Below the pieces are notes generated by a model that saw nothing but the letters and a program-made list of their open reading frames with translations, did not search any database and was not told the DNA's origin. Positions 5,940 to 62,149 of a stretch of DNA of 64,000 bases are shown here, piece after piece (the stretch's first letter is position 1; each line of letters opens with the position of its first letter). The position numbers were made by a program, and so were the translations under genes. Source of the DNA: Octopus sinensis (Eukaryota); assembly GCF_006345805.1 (NCBI RefSeq), contig NC_043015.1:12710001-12774000 (forward strand). Reading direction: 5' to 3'.

Positions 5940-7750
5940 ATTCAGCCCAATTCAAAATCAGGCGAAAGTAAAGAATACGCACACCCGATGTTTAGGGTTA
6001 GGGTTTTTGTTACCCCAAAAACGAATGGTGTGTGTGTTCTTTACCTCCGCCCAAAGTCGTTCATCAGACAACTAATTCTAATAAAATGCGAGTCAACAAA
6101 TTAAAACTACAGTTGGCATTCTACCGAAAGAATTCCTTACTGTTTTTAAAAGTTGATGTGAAATCTCGACGAATTGTGGTTAAAATTCATTTTCCTTTTA
6201 AATCTAAAAGATTTCTTGGCGTAGATCGTAAGTATAATATGAAGGTTAGATCATTGAACATTACCGTGGTATCCTGTGGATTAATTATGTTGTTTTTTTT
6301 TAATCTCAAGAAGGCACAAAACTTTGCGTATGATGCAGTGAATGAGAATATATGACCTTCGTACATTTTACAACAGCAAAAGTGATAAGAAGAGCAATGG
6401 CCACAATCGGGAAGAGAAACTATGTCGCGGACTTAAAATGACTCATTATAAAAATATTCAGTTAGGAAAATATATATAAACATATGACGACAATCTTTGG
6501 TATACAAGAAGGTTATTTTGAGAAGATATGAAGACGAGTTGAATAAATCAACATTTTTAAAATTGTGGTCACCCATATTACAAAAATCAAGGAAAGAAAT
6601 GTAAAATCAGAACTGGAAATGAGTGTCAAGGGAAGGGAGTTAATGGAAATCCGCGCTAATTGTCTTTCGTCGTTTGGTGTAGGATTTCTCAGTTCCATGG
6701 TGGAAAAGTCATTTGAAATAAATAAAATGAAAACAATCTTCAAGATGTACAAAAGTGTCCTTAAACTCGGAAAAACAAGGCATATAGCTTTAAAAATAAA
6801 CTAATCACTCAAAAGTAGGCATATACCGTACCGTCCCATACCTTATTTGATATAATAGGATATAAAAGCCCTAAAAAGTTTCATGACTGCGTTTAGTAGT
6901 ACACAGGACAATTTTTTCACTACAAACAAATGACACTTAGTGTGGAATAGAGAAACCGTGTCTTGAATTGTCTTCTTTATTTACAAGTAATAAACAGTGT
7001 TTTAAATATTACACATTAGACACTAAAACAAACGAAATAAAATATTTTGATAAAATTTAAACAAGGTAAACAATGAAGAACTGTGAAAAACTAAAATATA
7101 TATCCATAAATATTGAAGGGATTTCAACAAGTTGACGAAACAGTTATATGGGAGCAACGATTTAACCGTAAACAACGTTAAATAGATCATTTGATAGCAG
7201 ATGAAAGAAGTTCATTTACAAGTTATCAGCTTTTCTTCTGTCGTTCACTAGAAAAACACTTACCTGCATTACATCTTGAAGAAGTGAAGATATATAAGAA
7301 AAGCAATAACCATCGTAAATCCAACAGGTGTGTCGCCATCTTTACATTTAATAAGGTCAATTTTTCTCGATCAGGTAAGGCTAGAAAGGTAAGTGGTTTT
7401 ACACCTGTGCTGCCACCTATCTAGGTAATCAACAGTCACACCTTGTGTGACGGCAGTCGAAGCCGTATGAAATTGTAACTCTGTTCGTCTTTATTTACAA
7501 AAATTGATTGCTTTTATTAGGACACATCATGTGAAATATGCATGCTATTTGTTTGTTGTAACCAACAGATAATGTCGCGCACGTACCAAATAGAAACCGG
7601 TTTATTAACTGACTGCCATTACATTGATTGAAAAGTGCTAATTAAGAAACCGTTCTTTCCTAACGATAAAACATTTTTTGAAACAGGTTTGACGTTACAT
7701 GGTGCCGTGTGGTGACGGGGTGTCCTGGATCCAAAGAGACGAACTCAATA
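5940..7750 (-). promoter_or_regulatory. CpG-retaining promoter / first-intron region of the signal-peptide gene, with a YY1-type CGCCATCTT motif over the ATG
   Basis: CpG dinucleotides are visibly dense here compared with most unique sequence in the window. CGCCATCTT at 7334-7342; inverted repeat GTCACAC-ctt-GTGTGAC near 7435-7451. Confidence 0.5.
7264..7339 (-). CDS. First coding exon of an unidentified secreted or membrane protein: MATHLLDLRWLLLFLYIFTSSRCNA(G), signal peptide
   Basis: ATG in AAGATGGCG context; 25 codons plus 1 nt, then GCAG|gtaagtg. Basic n-region, hydrophobic core WLLLFLYIF, C-x-A cleavage motif and phase-1 intron. Surrounded by CpG-retaining sequence. Confidence 0.72.
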
Positions 7751-8540
7751 TCTCGTGTGACCACTGTTAGCGTTGATTACCGCCAGACATCTTCTGTACA
7801 TTGAATGCACTAAGCGATTGATGAAGGCCATTGGGATAGTAGCCCACACTCTGTTAAAACTTGCAGTGAGCTGTGCCGCAGTTTTTGGCGTTAAACGGAT
7901 ATCATTTAGCCTTCTTTGGATTTCGTCCCACAGGTGTTCTATGGGGTTCAAGTCCGGACTTTGGGCAGGCCATGGCAGTGTCTGGATGTTGTGCTGTTGG
8001 AAGAAGCCTGTTGCCAACCTGGTAGTGTGGGCACAGGCGTTGTCATATTGGAATACGTGATTCCAATGGTGGGCAAAGAATGGTGCAATGTGAGGTTCAA
8101 CACTTGATTGATGTAGTGAGCAGCAGTTAGTCCATTGCCCCGGCCTTGGATGATATTTTGGGACACCACTGGTCCAAGTTCCCAGTTGAGTGCTATCCTG
8201 CCCCATATCATAATGCTCTGTTTTCCCCATGAGTCTCTCGCCACCACACAGCTATTGGCATGGTGTTCACCTCTTCATCTCCAAACCTTAGCTCTGCCAT
8301 CTGCCACAGAAATGCAATTTTGACTTTTGTCAGAGAAGATTACGGTCCTTTACTGCTGATATCACCAGTTCTGACATTTTTGAGCCTACTGCAGATGTGC
8401 CTGTCGATAATGATCTGTGAGGATGGGGCCTCTAGCTGGATGGCAACTAGACAGATTGAAAGATCTCAGCTAGCAGCAATCTGTCTCTGCACAAATGGGT
8501 CTGTGGTGAGTCCGTATGGTTTGCCTAGCTGATTCTGTTG
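7745..8540 (-). mobile_element. Tc1-family transposase relic (frameshifted, premature stops)
   Basis: VIFSDKS, SIMIWG, FQYDNACAH and WPAQSPDLNPIEHLWD motifs spread over three frames; TIRs could not be fixed. Confidence 0.85.
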
Positions 8541-28073: not shown

Positions 28074-28285
28074 TTATCGCACCACTGCGGCTTCTTTATA
28101 ATCAGTACCCTCCATGGTAAAGAATTCTTCAAGCTTCCATTGCAAGGTCTCAAATGTCGGACGTTCCATTTCCTCTTTACGCCAACATTCCAACATAATA
28201 TCGTAGAGGGCTTTAGGACAGCAAGGTGGACATGGCATGCGGTAACCATGTTCTACTTGATGCAGGACTTCAGCATTGGTCATAC
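28074..28285 (-). CDS. Src42A: Src42A last coding exon: (G)[69 protein letters not shown]
   Basis: Acceptor ttttttcttgtag|GT at 28285, stop TAA at 28076-28074. The tail Tyr (DYKE) is at the Csk-regulated inhibitory position. Confidence 0.97.
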
Positions 28286-30378: not shown

Positions 30379-30579
<201 letters not shown>

Positions 30580-35584: not shown

Positions 35585-35854
<270 letters not shown>

Positions 35855-48799: not shown

Positions 48800-51295
48800 G
48801 TGTGTATGTATATATATGTGTTTGAGTTTTAAAATGAAATATGCAGTTACAAAGAGTTCAAACATGATAAAGTAAAAATGTGAAAGCTGGTGGGAGTTGA
48901 ACCCATATCTCCTTGGTGGGACTTGGGTACAATGTTCACTGCATTACATCAATAGAATCAACCTCCCACATTAGCATCATTAAAACAGTGTGTGTGTGTA
49001 TAATAAAAAGTAAAAAATATTATATATTGAGTTTTTTTCACACATACACACACACACACAAACGAGGGGGAGAGAGTCTGTGAGTGTATGTCTTATAGAG
49101 AATATAAAAAAAATAATGAGTTGCAATTTTGCACTTTAGGATATATAGAACCATTTCCAACACTCTTTTATTAGCAAGAACTTGATACTTCAATAGTGTT
49201 GCATGAAGAGAGTTAATGGAAACAGCAAACCCAGTATAAACTATTTAGAAAACATACCTTATATTTCTCAACAGTAATGTTTCTCTTTGAGAAGTAATTG
49301 AAAGATGGACCAAATATAGGAACCAGTACATAAAGGATCAAAGTAGAATCAGCATTAAGAACTAGATTCTTGAAACTCTGAATTTTTTGAAGAAAGGAGG
49401 GAAGAAGAAATAAAGCAGCCTTATTTATTGATTTTCTTATTACTACTGTGTTCTTTATCCGGTATCAGGGTTTGCCTTTTAATAAGTTAGTAGCTTCAGC
49501 AAAACAGAGATAGGGCTTTTGTGACTTGGCTCTTGATTCCCACCTGTAAGCTATTTCTCTTCACTTGTGCAATTAATGCTCTAAGGAAAGGAGGCATGTG
49601 TATCACAATATTTCTCTCCTCTCCATAAATCAATGCGCTGAGATGTGAACGATATGTCTGATTGGAAAAGGTTAAGCAATTGATTCTATGTAACATTCTG
49701 GTGCAGGGAATAAATATTTAACCTTAACATTAAAAAAAACAAAACCTTTAGTCATAGCAAACTGGAGAGCAGAGGATGCAAAAGACTGCAACTGAAAGAG
49801 ATTTTCACTGTAAAATTATTCAATAACTGCTATTTTCATTGTGAGATCATCAGCACTAACATTACTGATTTATTAGCATGAGTTCTGTCATGTTGACATA
49901 TCCTGAGGATACTACATGCAGATTATACTGATGCTCTAAATCCCCAATGAGTTGACTGTGTGTATATTATAAATACAAGGCTTATACAATTAGTATTGAC
50001 TAATTTATTTTAATTTTGTTTTTGTACCTTACATAGGTGTTGTGGATCAATATGCAATTGCTTATGGCTTCCAGTTATTTGTTTCAGTCATTGGTCTGTG
50101 GCCATACTGGAGCTCTGCCTTGAAGGGTTTATTGGAACAAATTGACCCCAGTACTTATTATTTTTGTTACCTATTCTATTAATATCTTTTGCTGAACCAC
50201 TAAGTTACAGGGACATAAACAAGCAAGCACCTGTTGTCAAGTGGTGGAGTGAGGGGAAAAACACAAACACACACATATATAAACACATACACAACAGTTT
50301 CCATCTACCAAATCCACACAGAAGGCTCTGGTTGGCCTAGGGTTATAGAAGACACTTGGCTAGGGCTATAGAAGACACTTGCAAGTTACCATGCAGTGGT
50401 GCTGAACCTGGAACCATGTGGCTGGGAAGCAAAACTTCTTAGCACATAACCATGCCAATGTCTGTGATTTATTCTTTAAACAATGTGAAACAACTAAACA
50501 TTATTACAAAAGGGAAGCTTACATTTAAGATGAAATCAAGAAGGTTGTTCAGTTTTACGAAAGAAAATGTTACGTTGAGAAATTGAGAAAATTGACTCCC
50601 TTTATTTGCAAAATGTTTTAGTAGCAGAAAAACAAATGAAAAACACTCTTTTCACGTCATAAGTTCTGATGTATTAAATAAGGCCCCAGAGGAAGTTAAT
50701 GCTTTTATTGTTAGGCAATTGGCATAAACAAATCCCAAAATCTAATTTGAGGATTAATATATAGTTAATACCCGTTTGACTACAAAAGAATGCTGTTTTT
50801 TAATATGTCACCACTCCATATAATTGACAAGTTGTTAAACCTATCTAACCCATCCTATAATTACCAGGAAGATAATAACAGTTGCTATATAAGTACAATT
50901 AAATAGGAGGTAATAAGCACAAACATTTTATCAATTTGGAAATGTGAATATAATAATATTAGTACATGAGTAAGCAAACATTTTAAAACAATATTCTAGC
51001 AGTGTTTCATACTAAGAGAGATAAACAAAAGTTAAAAGTTAGTAAACCAGTTCCAAGCTTTTCAATATTGATGGAGGAAAACAAAGTTAATGAAAACATG
51101 AATAGCAAAAACTTATGTTACAACATCTTCATTTCCAACAAGTGAAAAACTTTCAAAAAAAAGCCAGTGAAAAAAGTGAAGCAAAACAATAACAAGTCAT
51201 CATTTTTTTTTGGTTCAAACTGCATTTAACAATAATAATTAATAACTTGTTGAAGTTTAGATTAGTTCTCAACGAATACAAAATAGCACACTTAC

Positions 51296-51304
51296 CATCA
51301 TAAA
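51296..51304 (-). CDS. Src42A: Candidate 9-nt microexon TTTATGATG adding V-Y-D; an alternative acceptor 12 nt upstream gives 21 nt, VNIAVYD
   Basis: attgcag|TTTATGATG|gtaagtg. Long pyrimidine tract with several UGC motifs; AG-free 51319-51407. Both possible acceptors keep the frame. Confidence 0.55.
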
Positions 51305-51740
51305 CTGCAATGTTAACTAACAATTAAATATGCAAAAGCAGGACAAAAGATAAAAATAAAGTAAAAATTAAGATTAAAAAAAAAAAAAGAAAACCATTAT
51401 TTAATAACTCCCCAAATTTGACCATTGTGAGATGTTTGAATCATCACTGGAAAAAAAGCAGCAAAAAAAAAAAAAAGAACAAAAGACAAAAAAAGAAACT
51501 CTAGTAATTTCAAATGGATTTAATACTAATATCTTTTGAAGTCATGCTGGCATGTCTGTGTAGCAAAAAGTTAACTACATCCCCTTTTTTACGATAATAC
51601 TGGCATTAGTATTTTTTTATATTTTAATGATAATAAAGTAGTAGAAATGACTGACGTGTTAATCTTAAGTAAGTGAAATTATAATTCTGTGTATCTACAA
51701 GTGAAACCAAAATAAAACATCATATATATATATATATTAT

Positions 51741-51796
<56 letters not shown>

Positions 51797-51984
51797 TGGC
51801 CTGCTCGCTTAGCCAGCGGGGTGGCGTCATTCGAAGGCTAAAACAATGTGAACACATTGTAACCAGCGATGTGTAACAACATCTGATGGTTTGGTCGGTC
51901 ATGTGATATATATATAGCTACAGAAACACACACACACACATTATATATATATATTTACAGAGAGATGGACAAGGAGAGCTGCAT

Positions 51985-52352
51985 ACAAAAGTGCTGATCT
52001 CTAACTGTGGAGGGAACCTGTGGAAGAGGTAGACCCAACAAGACATGGGACGTGGTGGTGAAGCATGATCTCCGAATGTAGGGCCTCACAGAGGTGATGA
52101 CAAGTGATCATGACCTTTGTTGATTTGCTGTGCTAGAGAAGACTTGTCAAGCCAAGTGAAATCGTAGTTGTGGGCATTGCAGGCAACACGTAAAAGGTAC
52201 TCACTACACTCTCAGAGTGGTTGGTGTTAGGAAGGGCATCCAGCCATAGAAACCAAACCAAATTCAGACTAGAGCCTGGTATAACTCTTCAGCTTACCAG
52301 TTCCAGTCAAGCCATCTAACCCATACCAGCATGGAAAGCAGATGTTAAATGA
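51985..52352 (+). mobile_element. LINE ORF end plus shortened 3'UTR
   Basis: GTGGAAGAGGTAGACCCAACAAGACATGGGACGTGGTGGTGAAGCATGA...AGGAAGGGCATCCAGCC. Confidence 0.75.
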
Positions 52353-55300
52353 CAATGGTATTTACAGAGAGAGAAGGAGACATTTCAACTGAATTGAAAG
52401 TTTTTCTTATTTGTTGTTACTTTGTTACTTGTAGGTAACTGAAGAAAAAACTTGGGGTAATTATGCACTGTAATAGTAACTAAACAACACACTATTAAGA
52501 ATATGAGATGGGTTACTAAATGAGCAGCAGCATGGCTCTGGGTTTGATTCCACTACACAGCACCTTGGGTAAGTGACTTCTACCATAGCCTCAGTTTCAC
52601 CAATATTTTGTAAATGGAATTTGTTAAGTGGAAACTGTGCAGAAGCCCCAACATGAGGGGAACAAAAACAGTGCATTGAATAGGAACACATTGTAGTATT
52701 CATGATCAACTGAGTTATCTTCCATGCAAACATGACTGACTTCTTTTCACAAGGGGTCAATAAAATAAGTACCAGACTATTTGCTGGCAGAGGGTCTAGG
52801 ACAATGCAATTGACTAAAAACTAGTGTCCTATTAAGCTGCAGCCTAATAACTATAAAAGCAGTAAAAAAATAGTAAAGTTGGTATATCCTAGTACTGGTA
52901 GGTAATTAGTTTACATTTAATTTTTAGTTAGTCAATTAACTGAAACAATTGCCAATTCTCACTACTAATATTGATATCAGTTCTCCCAGTTATAAACCCA
53001 ATTAATGATACCAGTAAAAATTAGTTGTATTAATTGCAGAGGAGTTTATTAACCTAAGGTTTTCATGATGGTGTTCAAGTTATATAAAAGAATGTATTGA
53101 AATTATAAGGCTTACTAGAAGCTTAACTTTTAAAAGTTAAAGATATTAGAAAATCTTTCTTTTATTTTTCAAAATTATATTTGAAATTAATTAACTTTAT
53201 TAAATAAATATTAATTTTTCTTGATGGCAATTATTTAAAGGTATAGTGACTGAAATAAATAAGTTACTAAAATAATTGATTAATTGAAAAAGAAAAGAAA
53301 AAAGAAAGATAAAAATCAGGCCAGAAATACAGACTAAAATCAAGATATCCTTTTTGAAAATAGAAACCATATTGTATATGACAAGGTCTGAAAAATGAAA
53401 GTTTTTTGGAATATTCACAGAATGCCTGGTTAATAATTTCTGTTCATCAACCAAGAAGCAGTTACCACATCACAGAACACTTCATGCACGTGCGAAGCTA
53501 TTTTAATGTTGCTCCATAACATCCAGTGATCTTGGAAAGATGATTAAAAATGAGCCTTCTATGGAATCTAAACTAAATGGAAATGTTATAATTTTCCTAT
53601 TTTAAAGAACAAGTACTATATTAGTGGTTTTTGCATGGGTAAAATCAGAGGAGAGGGAAATAAAAATTTGTATCTGATTCAAATATAAATATTCTAACCA
53701 CAGACTTTGAAAGTGGGAAGAGAAAAACGTGGAATGACAGCATGAAGAAGTTTTATATCTAATTTATAAATACTTAGGAATTTTAATATAAGCAATGTGG
53801 GTGTCTTAGTTACTGGGTATTATTAATGTTTACACCTATGGCACGAGTTTATGAATTTCCCCCTTAAGTTACTTATCTGCTACACTAGAATAGTTACCAT
53901 GACAGTATTCTCAGTTAGTCTAAAGGATTTTGAAGAATATGATCAAATTATAAATGACTAACATTCTTCATACAAACAACATGTTTGTATGGAACAATTA
54001 TGTAACTGTTCTAGCTTTCTACACTTGGAGTTCAAACCCCCACCTCATCTCACTGGTAAAAAATGCACCCTTTGGGACCTGATACGAATGGTGATAGAAT
54101 TGGGAAGTTCTTACACAAGTGCCCAAGTATTTCAGCTGATCATTTTCAATGCTGACATGGGAACTTTCCAGTCCTGTGCACTCTCTCTTTAATCTTTTTT
54201 CAACAACTAAATAGACAATACTATAACATAAATACTATTAACTACAATTGATTGCCTATATATCTGTAGAAAAACATGAGAATTAATTAACAATATAGCA
54301 CCTCAGTTTTAATATAATCAGAAACTCATCACTACATTTCCAAATATTGAAAAGAAAAAGTATAGTGGATGATGCAACACTTTTTAAAAATATGAAATTA
54401 TTAAACTAAATTCTTTTTCTATAGCTACAAACCTAAGGAGACAATCATTTAAATGCTTGATTAATGAGCAATATTTTGTTTGGAGTATCTTTTCAAATAT
54501 TCAGTTTAGATTAATAAAGGCTTTTAAAGTAAAAATTTTTTTTTTCATCAAAATATTCCATCACCAAAAAAAGAAAGCTGGACAAAAGAACCAAAACAAG
54601 GAAAAACTGGAAATAGAATTAAAAAGGGAGGAAAAATACAGCAGAATAAAATAAAGTGTCAGAAATATGCAGTAGCAATAGTAGTAATGATAACGATGAT
54701 GATGATGATGGTAGTGGTAATGACATTAAAGAGAGTGACGTTCTGTTGAAGATAGCACTAACTGTAATATTGAAGATGATTATAATGATAAAGAGTAATT
54801 GTAATTATGGTTATGACAGCATCAATATATGCTCATTTTCAGCAAACTAACAAGGAACTAAAGAGCAATGTTAACAATAGCAAGCAATAACCATATTGTC
54901 AACATTGTTATTTGTTTACCTTAACTACTAATAGTTTGTAATTGTAGTCAGTAAAATGAAGAGGACCCGCTACACTATACCAGTTTTTGTGCCAAACTAG
55001 ATTTCAGTGAGTTTCAAGTCTAATAAGAACTTAAGATCAACTCTCAGAATATGTGAAAAGAAACTTGTTTGGCAGCAATCTTATCACAAAGGCAAAAGTT
55101 ATGAGGAGTGTATTAGTTTTAATTAATCTAATAATCAAAGAAGCAATGTAGATGGTACTAATACAGCTGCTGGTAATGATAATTATGATGATGATAATGA
55201 TGAGGAGAGCAGTAGAGAAAGATTGAGATGTGTTTGGCAAGAGAAGATAAGCAAAAAAACGTGCTGAATGTTTGTCTGCTGGATAAGAGAGAGAGAGAGA

Positions 55301-56903
55301 GAGATTGAGAGTTAGTTGTTTATCACAACACAAACACACCTCATTATACTAGAGTTTCAAAGCTCTACTAGTGATTGCTGACAAGCACAATCATTTAAAC
55401 TACTGTTAGTGTGATAAGTATGTATATGAGGTTAGGCATTTCTTTTTTTCTTTGCATTAGTATAGATGTTTGCTTTGTTGGTCTAATCTGTATAGTCATG
55501 ATTACGGGTGTTTGCATGTTTTCTTTGCTTTATCTGTTTGTAGTTGCATGTACATATGAGGGTAATTGCACTATTTAAGTTGTATATTTGTTTTATTTAT
55601 CAGTATGTAATAAAAAGTCAATGTAGGAACTAAAATTTAGGTAAGTTTTTAACAAAAATTCCAGGATGATGAGACATTAAAGTTCCCTTTTTTTAAAGAT
55701 TAATCTTGAAAAAGGGTAAAGCTATGTGTCATATTGTGGTTCTTCTGTTTTTAGCCTGACAAGCATACATAGAAATATATCTAAAATGAGAATGTATATA
55801 ATGTATACTGGCATTCATTAGAAAGTTTCCCTTGGTAGGATGAACATCTAAATCTCAGCTCAAAGTCAGAATTATACTATGCTGTTCTTTGCAAGATTTG
55901 AATAACAGATTGATAAGCATCAGTATGGTATTATTTACAATGATAATTTTGATCAATAAATATAAGGGCTTGACCAGCCGCTATCAGATTGAGCCAGTTG
56001 CTGTCTAGATGTCAGATGTTCGAGGACCCTGTACTACTGACTTCCTCCACCAAATAGGGATAATGACAGTCTGTTGGAGTAATGAGCTCTGTGAGCCGGA
56101 AGTGGCTGCTGCAGTGAGTGTTGCTGGCTATTCTCCAAGGCAATGCTGTCACGGGTACAACTGAGTACACAATTTGTTCTGGGGTATGTGGCCAATTTCC
56201 CCCTCCTATCTACTGCTGCTATACCTCACCCTTTTCTTTTTTTTTTTCTTTATCTCTCTTTTTTCCTGTTTCTTTGTATCTAAATGTTAATAATTTTATT
56301 CTGAAAAGCTATTTTAATAAAGTAAATAGTTTCAAAGAAATTTTCACATAAGCATAAGATTTCAAATCTGTAAGATGTATTTATCAATTGAATCATACAG
56401 ATTCTCAATACACATTTATAAAATGTATACATTTATAAAATATATACATGTATAGTCAATCAAGATGTTACTAAAATTGATATTCAATAGCATGTCATCT
56501 TGTTTTCTATTAAGAGGCTTATTTCTACCAGCTTATATGATATGTAATTTGATGCATGTAGATCATGTATGTCGACAATATAGTGCAACAAAATATAGGA
56601 ATATTCTAATATAATTTATAAATGTTTTGCAATGTATATTTGCTATATAATGTCATAGATAAAGATAATGTAATTTGGATGAGGTAATAGAATTCATAAA
56701 GAGTTTGTTGTTCATATAATGCAGTGCAATGTCTACAGATCGTGTAAGTAATGTAGTGTGTGCATGAAAGAATGAAATTCCAATGCAAAACTTAATGAGA
56801 AAACCTTATAGTGTAGTAGATTTTCATAGCATAAGCAGGAATCTTATTCTGGTCTTCTGCGCTAAGTACTTTTTAGTGTTATCACACCTCTACAGTCACT
56901 TAC

Positions 56904-56912
56904 CTGCCGACA
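56904..56912 (-). CDS. Src42A: Candidate 9-nt cassette microexon TGTCGGCAG, adding V-S-A between YLQ and GKGR
   Basis: cacctag|TGTCGGCAG|gtaagtg. No AG for 92 nt upstream (56915-57006), including a U-rich tract and a UUAAC branch-like motif. Frame-preserving in phase 1. Same position and length as the AIA in Drosophila Src42A YLQAIAGKGR (recalled from memory). Confidence 0.6.
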
Positions 56913-58954
56913 CTAGGTGAGTAACCATCATCATACGTCATTAATCAGGGTGATTAGAGAATTAAAAGAAAATAAAAAAAAAGAAAAGAGAATGTAGTTA
57001 AAAAGGCTTGTCCACACTTTACAAAACAAAAGAAATAAAATGGCATAAATAATATGTGTTTATATGTCTCATAGACTGTTTGTGAAAAGATGAGAAATAA
57101 GTCATCAGTTTAAGTTTATTGGATAGAACTTGAAAAATAATTTTTTAAAAAAAGGCTTTTTTTTAAATGAATGATAAGGGATATTTAAATTTTTAATAAA
57201 ATCTTTCAGTGAAAGAAATCTTGAACCTGAAATATTGGAAATATTTTGATGATGAAAAAATAAATATAGTAAAGATATAAGTTCAACAAAGAACAATATT
57301 TGAAATTAGTTTCAAATATTAATTAATATATCTGATTTTGCAGTTATAAATCATTTTAGCTGAAAAGCAAAGCGAAAATGATACACTGATATCGAAATAA
57401 GATACATCATTGAGAGAGAAAGAAAGAGAATTTGGGGAGATGAGGGAGAAGTGAAGCACAATGGGAGTGAACAAAAACGTCTATGGATATGCAGATACGT
57501 TACATGTTTACATGAATAAATAAAACTTTAGCATATTCAATTAATTTATGAAGTAACTAAAGTAATTGATACATGTCCAAAGTAAACTGTTTCCAATTTG
57601 TGATGCAAGGAAATTAGTGAGAGGTTATTCTCTCTGTTTAGAGTTAAAATTCTAGTTTATTTGTACACTTAAAATCACTTAATGATTGGTGTATCGCAAG
57701 AGTATATAATGAAATCAATTTGAAAAATGACTCAAATTTTAAATGTTAACATCCCAAATTGTTTGTTCTTATCAACAACTGAAGACAAGCACTATTAAAG
57801 AGAACTGTTACTTTGATGTGGAACTATACCACAAATATTGTCATTCGCTAGTCTGGATTAATAAATATTTAGTTTCTTTATATGAAGTAATCTAATGTAG
57901 AGCCCTCAGTCTCTAGTCCTAGAACTTACATATCTACGTATCTCAATCATTAACCTGACAAAAATTCAAATTGAATTTGAATTGTTTGGGTTTTATTTAT
58001 ATCTTCAGTCTAGGATAATCTAACAAAACCACAAGCATAGCTTTTTTCTCTTCAGAAGTCTAAACCAAAATTGAAGACTGATATAAAATGCTTTTATCTA
58101 GATATTTTCCATTTGAGATAGATCAGCAATTTTGGATATCTGCATGAACTTTTGACACCTTTTACAAATGATGCATTTTATGTCATTATGCAATCGATTA
58201 TGAAATGGGAATAAAAGATAATTTCCTAATAGGTAGAATAAAAAATAATAGAAGTCATTTCTTTATTTTTGCTTAACTGATTTATCTATAGCTTAGCCCA
58301 ATACCACTGATATAATACAAGCTCACAGTGCCACATTTCAAAGGTTGATACTTTATTCTCTCAGCTGCTAAGTATTAACTGAAAACATGGAATAATATTT
58401 GTTTCGCTTCTCATTATATAATATGTTATCAACAATTTATGCTGTGATAACATTTTTCAGTGATAGTAAACTGGAGAGCTAGTTATGTGACATCAGATTG
58501 ATATCCAACATTAGGACTGAGAGGTTTGGTTATTTAGTAGTTTCTCCAGTAAATATGATTTAATTAGTAGCAGTTGTTACTAGAACTTAAGGAGAAAATT
58601 CTGTCTTGCCAATCCTGGTAATGAGTTCTTTATTTCCTATTTAGTGAAATGAAAACTTCTCTTATTAGGCAAAAACATGATGGAGGCAGGTGCAACAAAG
58701 AATGAGTATATACATAGGAAGCCTGGAATTCAAATCAAAGCTATGTCAAAATTAAAGTTCAAATAAATGTTTCTATTAAATTTGTTGCTTAAAAATGAAG
58801 CAAAATGTATTTGTTTTTGTTTAAAGAGAAAATATAAATATCAAATGACTATGAGAGTTAATATGACGGAATGCTCAAAACATTTTTAACAATGTAGAAT
58901 ATAAAAAAAAAAGCCTCAATCAAGTGTTGCAAAATTAACAAAGAAAAAAATCCT

Positions 58955-61990: not shown

Positions 61991-62149
61991 CTTGTAAGTA
62001 GTCCAGTAAACTACCATTTCTCATAAGTTCAGTTACAATGTAGATTGGTTCATCCTGGGTACATACAGCATACAATTGGATTAATTTGCTGTGTCGAAGT
62101 TTCTTCATTATTTGAGCTTCTTGTAAGAAGTCTTTGGGATCCATTGTCC
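61991..62149 (-). CDS. Src42A: Src42A/FRK-type tyrosine kinase, kinase-domain exon A (alphaC to alphaD): (G)[52 protein letters not shown](G)
   Basis: Lies in ORF 61833..62171. Acceptor ttaatttag|GG at 62149, donor CAAG|gtaatt at 61991; 159 nt, phase 1 to phase 1. Sequence closely matches Src42A-type kinases as recalled, including the Thr gatekeeper (IVTELM). Confidence 0.96.

Follow-up and report, generated by a model that had tools for sequence, protein, structure and literature searches.

A Conserved Nine-Nucleotide Cassette Microexon in the Kinase Domain of Octopus Src42A

Introduction

In vertebrates and flies, the remodeling of signaling proteins by microexons is characteristic of complex nervous systems, and cephalopods constitute an obvious third test case. 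The N1-Src microexon of vertebrates adds 5 or 6 residues to the SH3 domain and has been conserved through vertebrate evolution (PMC5577857). In Drosophila, Src42A contains a 27-nucleotide (nt) eMIC-dependent microexon (chr2R:6009798-6009824, dm6), and the gene is listed among the eMIC targets of fly brains (PMC8797185). The cis code of eMIC-dependent exons includes a long AG exclusion zone, a distal branch point, and UGC motifs near the 3′ splice site (PMC8797185). The present work deals with a stretch of 64,000 nt of the Octopus sinensis genome (contig NC_043015.1, positions 12,710,001 to 12,774,000), hereafter called the window, on the minus strand of which lies the 3′ half of Src42A, the octopus gene for an FRK-type kinase of the Src family, and in particular with the very short alternative sequences found in one intron of this gene.

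Receptor tyrosine kinases of the PDGFR/VEGFR/FGFR class possess, between helices alphaD and alphaE of the kinase domain, a constitutive insert of 14–100 residues that serves as a phosphotyrosine docking segment. At the RNA level, stem-loops that sequester the 5′ splice site tune the inclusion of exons such as MAPT exon 10 and SMN2 exon 7 (the TSL2 stem-loop). Another documented, but rare, class of splicing signals is that of TG 3′ splice sites, which are only used as alternatives to an AG located within 28 nt (PMC2374985).

The reading that we propose, to which we assign a probability of about 0.85, is that the 26-kb intron of octopus Src42A contains one genuine and conserved 9-nt cassette microexon, coding for Val-Ser-Ala (VSA), together with a Val-Val (VV) extension of the following exon, while a second unit of similar appearance (VYD) is a prediction only. 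The existence of the VSA exon is already known from RefSeq isoform models, so that the value of this analysis lies in its characterization; no published description of this cephalopod exon was found in the literature searched.

The VSA Microexon in Genomic Sequence, Annotations and Transcripts

Exon A and exon B of the octopus kinase gene are separated by an intron of 26,188 nt in phase 1, which splits the Gly codon of ...LLDYLQ/GKGR... (slashes mark splice boundaries). The VSA microexon is located within this intron at 56904–56912 of the minus strand. It is 9 nt long, of phase 1-1, and the whole unit is cctag/TGTCGGCAG/gtaagtga, with cctag as acceptor and a donor, CAG/gtaagtga, that matches the consensus at 9 of 9 positions. 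Read in phase 1, it gives G/TG TCG GCA G/GA, that is, V-S-A. Inclusion converts ...DYLQ-GKGR... into ...DYLQ-VSA-GKGR..., lengthening the loop between helices alphaD and alphaE by three residues with the frame kept.

Exon A (61991–62149, minus strand; sequence read and tblastn with kinase baits) covers the kinase N-lobe to helix alphaD (...GTMDPKDF...GSLLDYLQ) and the first base of the Gly codon. Its last bases are ...GGACTACTTACAAG, and it ends as ...GAC TAC TTA CAA G/gtaatt (TTACAAG/gtaattc), with the boundary at 61991 and CAAG/gtaatt as donor. Exon B (35625–35802, minus strand; sequence read and tblastn) begins with GAAAGGGTCGTACAC, contributes the GA of the Gly codon, and runs from helix alphaE to the DFG motif (HRDLAARN...DFGLARVIK); its 5′ boundary at 35802 is ttgtag/GA AAG GGT (ttgtag/GAAAGGG). 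The direct junction, CAAG/GAAAGG, is present in Sepia transcripts.

A protein search with a chimeric query of 408 residues, used to reach full-length proteins, gave as the closest database entry P0247, a protein of 526 residues from an RNA-seq assembly that is 96% identical to the window product and whose sole gap is ...DYLQVSAGKGR.... The VSA insert is also found in the RefSeq isoforms XP_029648313.1, XP_029648314.1 and XP_014775612.1. In the 90% identity cluster, the four O. sinensis isoforms carry LQVSAVVGKGR (X1), LQVSAGKGR (X2), LQVVGKGR (X3) and LQGKGR (X4). The same cluster includes O. bimaculoides X1, with a VV insert, and X2, with no insert, as well as two models from an older O. bimaculoides release, one with VSA and one with VV, and the Argonauta hians protein, which has no insert. 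Four loop variants are therefore annotated: none, VV, VSA and VSAVV (0, +2, +3 and +5 residues), VSA and VV being used independently of each other.

Inclusion and skipping of VSA are also both present in a second lineage. Among full-length transcripts from the Logan collection, nine contigs contain VSA (P0247, P0372, P0373) and 100 contigs do not (P0369–P0371). The two forms coexist inside one cuttlefish study series, as in SRR25097171 versus SRR25097168, which are runs from whole hatchlings of Sepia esculenta (PMC10571815), and another of the runs, SRR3011300, derives from a whole animal of Sepia pharaonis (PMC5541922). The VSA exon is thus real, alternatively used, and already annotated in RefSeq models.

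The microexon has three nucleotide versions: TGTCGGCAG in the window, TTTCAGCAG in Sepia, and TGTCAGCAG in SRR24189500, a third, decapodiform-like run. All of them encode VSA and they differ at synonymous positions only, while the flanking coding exons show 80–86% identity between the octopus and cuttlefish lineages. The VSA peptide is conserved in Octopus, two species of Sepia and the third run. Because one and the same peptide is maintained by three nucleotide versions between flanks of such divergence, the sequence comparison indicates that the exon is under protein-level constraint and is at least as old as the octopus–cuttlefish split.

Position of the Insert in the Kinase Domain

When the sequences of c-Src crystal structures are aligned, the insert falls at ...DFLK/GETGKYLRLPQL (in a longer form, ...SLLDFLK/GETGKYLRLPQLVD). 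The insertion point is consequently located between alphaD and alphaE, in the C-lobe of the kinase domain, and outside the SH3 n-Src loop. An earlier examination of the window, made from its letters alone (the sequence-only reading), had placed the insert in the catalytic domain of a Src42A-like gene, and both statements hold: the window translation is 100% identical to the proteins named tyrosine-protein kinase Src42A of O. sinensis, O. vulgaris and O. bimaculoides over the 235-residue part encoded in it. We take the insertion site to be the end of helix alphaD and the start of the alphaD–alphaE loop, which topologically is the kinase insert position of receptor tyrosine kinases. The vertebrate c-Src loop is, in the same alignment, one residue longer than the insert-free octopus form, which suggests that the loop tolerates changes in length. 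An extension here would lie on the C-lobe surface, by the hinge and helix alphaD, and could alter docking or regulation rather than chemistry.

The intron position itself is also found in arthropods, as revealed by read-through open reading frames of the type LQG...GKGR in arthropod contigs; it is therefore old in protostomes. Small inserts at LQ/GKGR were observed in other protostomes as well: +GKGT or +GKGN in psyllids, +GL in the spider Parasteatoda, +Q in isoform X2 of Dreissena, and +G in one JGI sequence. The proteins behind these cases (P0292, P0294, P0326, P0299 and P0323) belong to related loci outside the window. The ancient phase-1 LQ/GKGR intron may be, judging from these sequences, a recurrent hotspot for small alternative insertions.

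Architecture of the VSA Unit and Rarity of the Pattern

Upstream of the VSA acceptor there is an AG-free zone of 92 nt (56915–57006, minus strand; sequence read) with a distal U/C-rich tract, and branch-point-like CUAAU and CUGAU motifs are situated 45 and 36 nt from the 3′ splice site. No UGC motif is present in the 60 nt upstream of this site. The exon would be defined by its fully matching 5′ splice site in combination with a polypyrimidine tract and a branch point that are both remote, and with the 92-nt AG-free zone. A predicted RNA hairpin (56892–56928, minus strand) pairs the flank of the 3′ splice site, GGUUACUCACCU, with the 5′ splice site, AGGUAAGUGACU, leaving most of the VSA microexon in the loop. 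The predicted structure comprises 41 nt, has an energy of −14.6 kcal/mol, and accounts for 71% of the ensemble (z = −2.17), and 7 of 200 shuffled sequences were as good. A stem that pairs the acceptor flank with the donor could compete with U1 binding and set the level of VSA inclusion, which this competition would make tunable.

The sequence-only reading had described two 9-nt units in one 26-kb phase-1 intron, sharing the donor, a first Val residue and AG-free zones of about 90 nt, and had assigned a different control logic to each of them. The positions and sequences of both units and their zones (92 and 89 nt) are as described, and the two features invoked for control, the hairpin at VSA and a UGC-rich tract at VYD, are both present in the sequence. 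The intron contains four GTAAGT sites, of which only two are GGTAAGTG, and these are exactly the two with in-frame acceptors that are open, i.e., free of stops. Among the 62 GTRAGT sites on the two strands of the window, both units also rank at the top for the pyrimidine content of the preceding 100 nt (0.67 and 0.71), a stretch with only two AGs.

A microexon-architecture filter was applied that required a donor with at least 8 of 9 consensus matches, an exon of 3–30 nt, an AG-free zone of at least 60 nt and a pyrimidine fraction of at least 0.6. Three sites pass it in 128 kb, all of them on the gene strand and within this intron, while first-order Markov simulations yield 0.16 sites per 64 kb. 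The two-unit pattern is more than chance. The third site (49258–49284, minus strand) is 27 nt long, follows a 75-nt AG-free zone and has the donor AAG/gtatgt, but in phase 1 it contains the stops TGA and TAA; from its sequence, it could represent a poison exon or a decoy, or else have arisen by chance. Recursive splicing was considered for both units and rejected, since the GT donor is not regenerated by either acceptor (AG/TG, AG/TT).

The VYD/VNIAVYD Candidate

The candidate VYD microexon, TTTATGATG (51296–51304, minus strand), is 9 nt long and of phase 1-1. The unit reads ttgcag/TTTATGATG/gtaagtgt, its donor (ATG/gtaagtgt) matches 8 of 9 consensus positions, and its transcript support is none. 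A longer candidate of 21 nt, VNIAVYD (TTAACATTGCAGTTTATGATG; 51296–51316, minus strand; sequence read), would use the same donor with an upstream acceptor, ttgttag. If any of these exons is used, the 51316 acceptor is the more likely one, because it is the first AG after the AG-free, U-rich zone of 89 nt that precedes the candidate (51319–51407, minus strand; sequence read). Two UGC motifs precede the 51316 acceptor, at distances of 24 and 18 nt, and another one is within UUGCAG at the 51304 acceptor. These three UGCs in the last 45 nt represent a density that is reached or exceeded in 1.3% of intron windows. An origin of the VSA and VYD units from dispersed repeats was examined and rejected, the only matches being homopolymers. 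About 0.4 kb upstream of the candidate, in transcript sense, there is a long microsatellite of the (AT)n type, whose arms are perfectly self-complementary (51717–51797 and 51906–51961).

We lean, if only slightly, toward considering the VYD unit as a pseudo-exon or decoy, in which a U-rich tract arisen by chance or from a repeat, two AGs and a strong donor happen to coincide in a long AT-rich intron, and which would be included never or as noise. It has left no trace in annotated or assembled isoforms: no VYD or VNIAVYD isoform is present in the O. sinensis, O. bimaculoides, O. vulgaris and Argonauta annotations or in the 109 full-length cuttlefish contigs. Exact-match look-ups of hypothetical full-length isoforms were also carried out in a collection of 15 billion proteins, using 19 different sequences plus one VSA control; in 13 of the 19, the inserts VYD, VNIAVYD, VSAVYD, VSAVNIAVYD, VYDVV and VNIAVYDVV were placed in the backgrounds of O. 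sinensis, O. bimaculoides, Argonauta and Sepia. All 13 different VYD/VNIAVYD sequences are absent from the collection, in which rare or fragmentary transcripts are missed, while the control (VSA in the Sepia background) is present; in fact, none of the 20 sequences but the control was found. Part of the U-richness of the unit is due to homopolymer runs, which could be the tails of retroposons on the opposite strand, and a similar, stop-containing site exists 2 kb downstream. On the other hand, the donor, the AG-free zone, the open in-frame AGs and the UGC motifs are jointly improbable (for this intron, we roughly estimate the probability of a chance occurrence at a few percent), and the remaining 102 kb of the window, counting both strands, contain nothing comparable.

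The sequence-only reading had gone further and proposed a combinatorial cassette, in which VSA and VYD (or the 21-nt VNIAVYD) would each be in use and could be joined, giving up to six neuronal loop variants, under the control of a hairpin in one case and of a UGC/Srrm-type mechanism in the other. We find this model unlikely. Several features speak for it: the VYD unit has the same donor, GGTAAGTG, and an AG-free zone of about 90 nt, like the validated VSA exon; it is the most U-rich among the 62 GTRAGT sites and one of only three that pass the architecture filter; both of its AGs are open and in frame; it lies outside dispersed repeats; and its UGC density matches the cis code of eMIC-dependent exons (PMC8797185). 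The unit bears the sequence signature of a neural microexon of the Srrm/eMIC type, and is a prediction only. Set against these features are the same absences from four octopod annotations, 109 cuttlefish contigs and the protein collection, the homopolymer share of the U-richness, and the third site (49284–49258), whose stops indicate that passing the filter does not by itself mark a coding exon.

What stands of the proposed cassette is that VSA is real, alternative, conserved and annotated, and that combined use at this loop is annotated too (X1, LQVSAVVGKGR); what does not stand is the partner, which in public isoforms is the 6-nt VV insert and neither VYD nor VNIAVYD, for which no annotation exists. 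As far as public data go, only one of the two microexons is used, which favors the refutation of the two-microexon cassette without being final, given that a rare 9-nt exon can be missed. Short-read assemblies and annotations can miss such an exon. The exact look-ups, which miss rare isoforms and fragmentary contigs, weaken the VYD exon but do not kill it; we give the VYD/VNIAVYD unit a chance of about one in three of reaching an inclusion of 1% or more in some tissue.

The VV Insert and the Acceptor of Exon B

The VV insert comprises 6 nt and two residues, and it is annotated either alone or joined to VSA as VSAVV. The VV isoforms are XP_029648315.1, XP_052830635.1 and XP_014775613.1, and VSAVV is found in XP_029648313.1. 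Directly upstream of exon B there is the sequence TTGTAG (35803–35808, minus strand), which in phase 1 reads G/TT GTA G/GA, that is, V V G, and which, from the sequence and the protein isoforms, is the probable source of the annotated VV. It is preceded by ...gttcTG, so that the complete arrangement is ttcTG/TTGTAG/GAAAGG. A VV insert in phase 1 must have the form TNGTNG; since the intron contains no AG-TNGTNG-GT or AG-TNGTNG-GC, TTGTAG is the only possible source in this intron, and a canonical 6-nt exon was rejected on this ground. VV is therefore probably generated by a TG-AG tandem acceptor, with the TG located 6 nt upstream of the canonical AG, and would extend exon B by 6 nt, both in the presence of VSA and in its absence. 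The 36 nt that extend back to the previous AG (35803–35838, minus strand; ggcag/CCTGCTC...TTGTAG) are also open in phase 1.

A different origin of VV, be it a canonical 6-nt microexon, a variant of the reference genome (for instance, AG in place of TG) or an annotation artefact, seems doubtful to us. In its favor, the VV isoforms are known as protein sequences only, gene-prediction pipelines normally favor canonical splice sites, and VV was not found by exact look-up on two Sepia backgrounds. Apart from the lack of a canonical alternative in the intron, the position of TTGTAG exactly at the exon B boundary argues against such an origin, as do the independent annotation of VV for two species, in the case of O. 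bimaculoides in two releases, and the documented existence of TG-AG tandems spaced by no more than 28 nt (PMC2374985).

The Remainder of the Window

The window encodes the C-terminal 235 residues of the kinase in four coding exons, the last one with the stop codon, according to sequence reading and tblastn searches with kinase baits. The same searches place the exon after exon B at 30423–30579 (minus strand; ending in ...VPYPG) and the last coding exon at 28074–28285 (minus strand; ending in ...DYKEAAVVR before the stop). The gene spans a range of 119–220 kb in O. sinensis, O. bimaculoides and Argonauta hians, and relatives from JGI sources are named fyn-related kinase. Downstream of the kinase gene, an open reading frame of 161 residues (7745–8230, minus strand) shows a match to the DDE_3 transposase domain (E = 4.6e-10) and represents a transposon remnant. 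Also outside the kinase gene, near 7263 on the minus strand, there is another CAG/GTAAGTG donor with an AG 11 nt upstream. An Rfam scan of the window matched no family.

Discussion

Several observations weigh against the reading of one conserved VSA microexon with a VV extension, or against parts of it. The single isoform retrieved from Argonauta lacks the insert. The material behind the VSA contigs was whole animals or hatchlings, which bears on the neural part. The hairpin at VSA is only moderately better than shuffled sequences. The candidate TG acceptor follows from the sequences of protein isoforms and not from mRNA nucleotides; a sequence difference between the window and the annotated genomes, or an annotation quirk, is possible. 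Finally, an AlphaFold model of the VSA isoform had a mean pLDDT (the confidence score of the model) of 51.6, with the kinase domain below 50; it adds nothing and was not used. Neural specificity and independence from the vertebrate n-Src exons are both putative, although plausible.

It is rather improbable that the locus holds a splicing code of three elements, with a hairpin-gated VSA, a UGC-flanked VYD/VNIAVYD restricted to some neuronal population or stage and a TG-AG VV, giving up to a dozen variants of the alphaD–alphaE loop, which, if true, would make it an independent counterpart of vertebrate n-Src acting on the catalytic domain.

With one conserved VSA microexon and the VV extension, the locus already offers a 9-nt exon whose peptide has remained intact across the octopus–cuttlefish split, in the catalytic domain of a Src-family kinase and at the position of the regulatory insert of receptor kinases. 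It is a small, clean and experimentally tractable example, in which four loop variants, and possibly more, are combined with a putative switch of RNA structure and a candidate non-canonical TG acceptor. The candidate tandem acceptor of VV and the predicted hairpin are its more unusual details.

Comparison with Known Systems

As in vertebrate N1- and N2-Src, a Src-family kinase is diversified here by very short in-frame cassette exons. However, the vertebrate exons act on the n-Src loop of the SH3 domain, while the octopus exon, of 9 nt, is located at the alphaD–alphaE loop of the kinase C-lobe, and the octopus gene belongs to the Src42A/FRK group and not to the Src/Fyn/Yes group. N1/N2-Src is therefore an analogue and not a homologous exon.

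With the eMIC (Srrm234/SRRM4) program the locus shares very short in-frame exons in a signaling gene, long AG exclusion zones and distal branch points, the zones of both units and the CUAAU 45 nt upstream of VSA being in agreement with this feature. The unvalidated VYD candidate also has the UGC motifs of the program, whereas no UGC is found in the 60 nt next to the 3′ splice site of VSA, the validated exon.

The kinase insert of receptor tyrosine kinases occupies, according to kinase architecture and the c-Src alignment, the same topological position as the octopus insert. The latter is, in contrast, of only 2–5 residues (up to 10 in the two-microexon model) and is produced by alternative splicing.

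The stem-loops of MAPT exon 10 and SMN2 exon 7 (TSL2) resemble the hairpin predicted at VSA in that an alternative exon has its 5′ splice site within a local stem. At VSA, however, the other arm of the stem is the flank of the 3′ splice site and the microexon itself is placed in the loop, and the statistical support is modest.

The TG-AG tandems described by Szafranski et al. in 2007 (PMC2374985) provide the closest parallel to the VV insert: the TG lies 6 nt before the canonical AG, hence within the 28-nt limit, and has a pyrimidine at −3. The described cases are human or vertebrate and prefer a purine at +1, where the octopus sequence has a T, and the octopus tandem is deduced from protein isoforms only.

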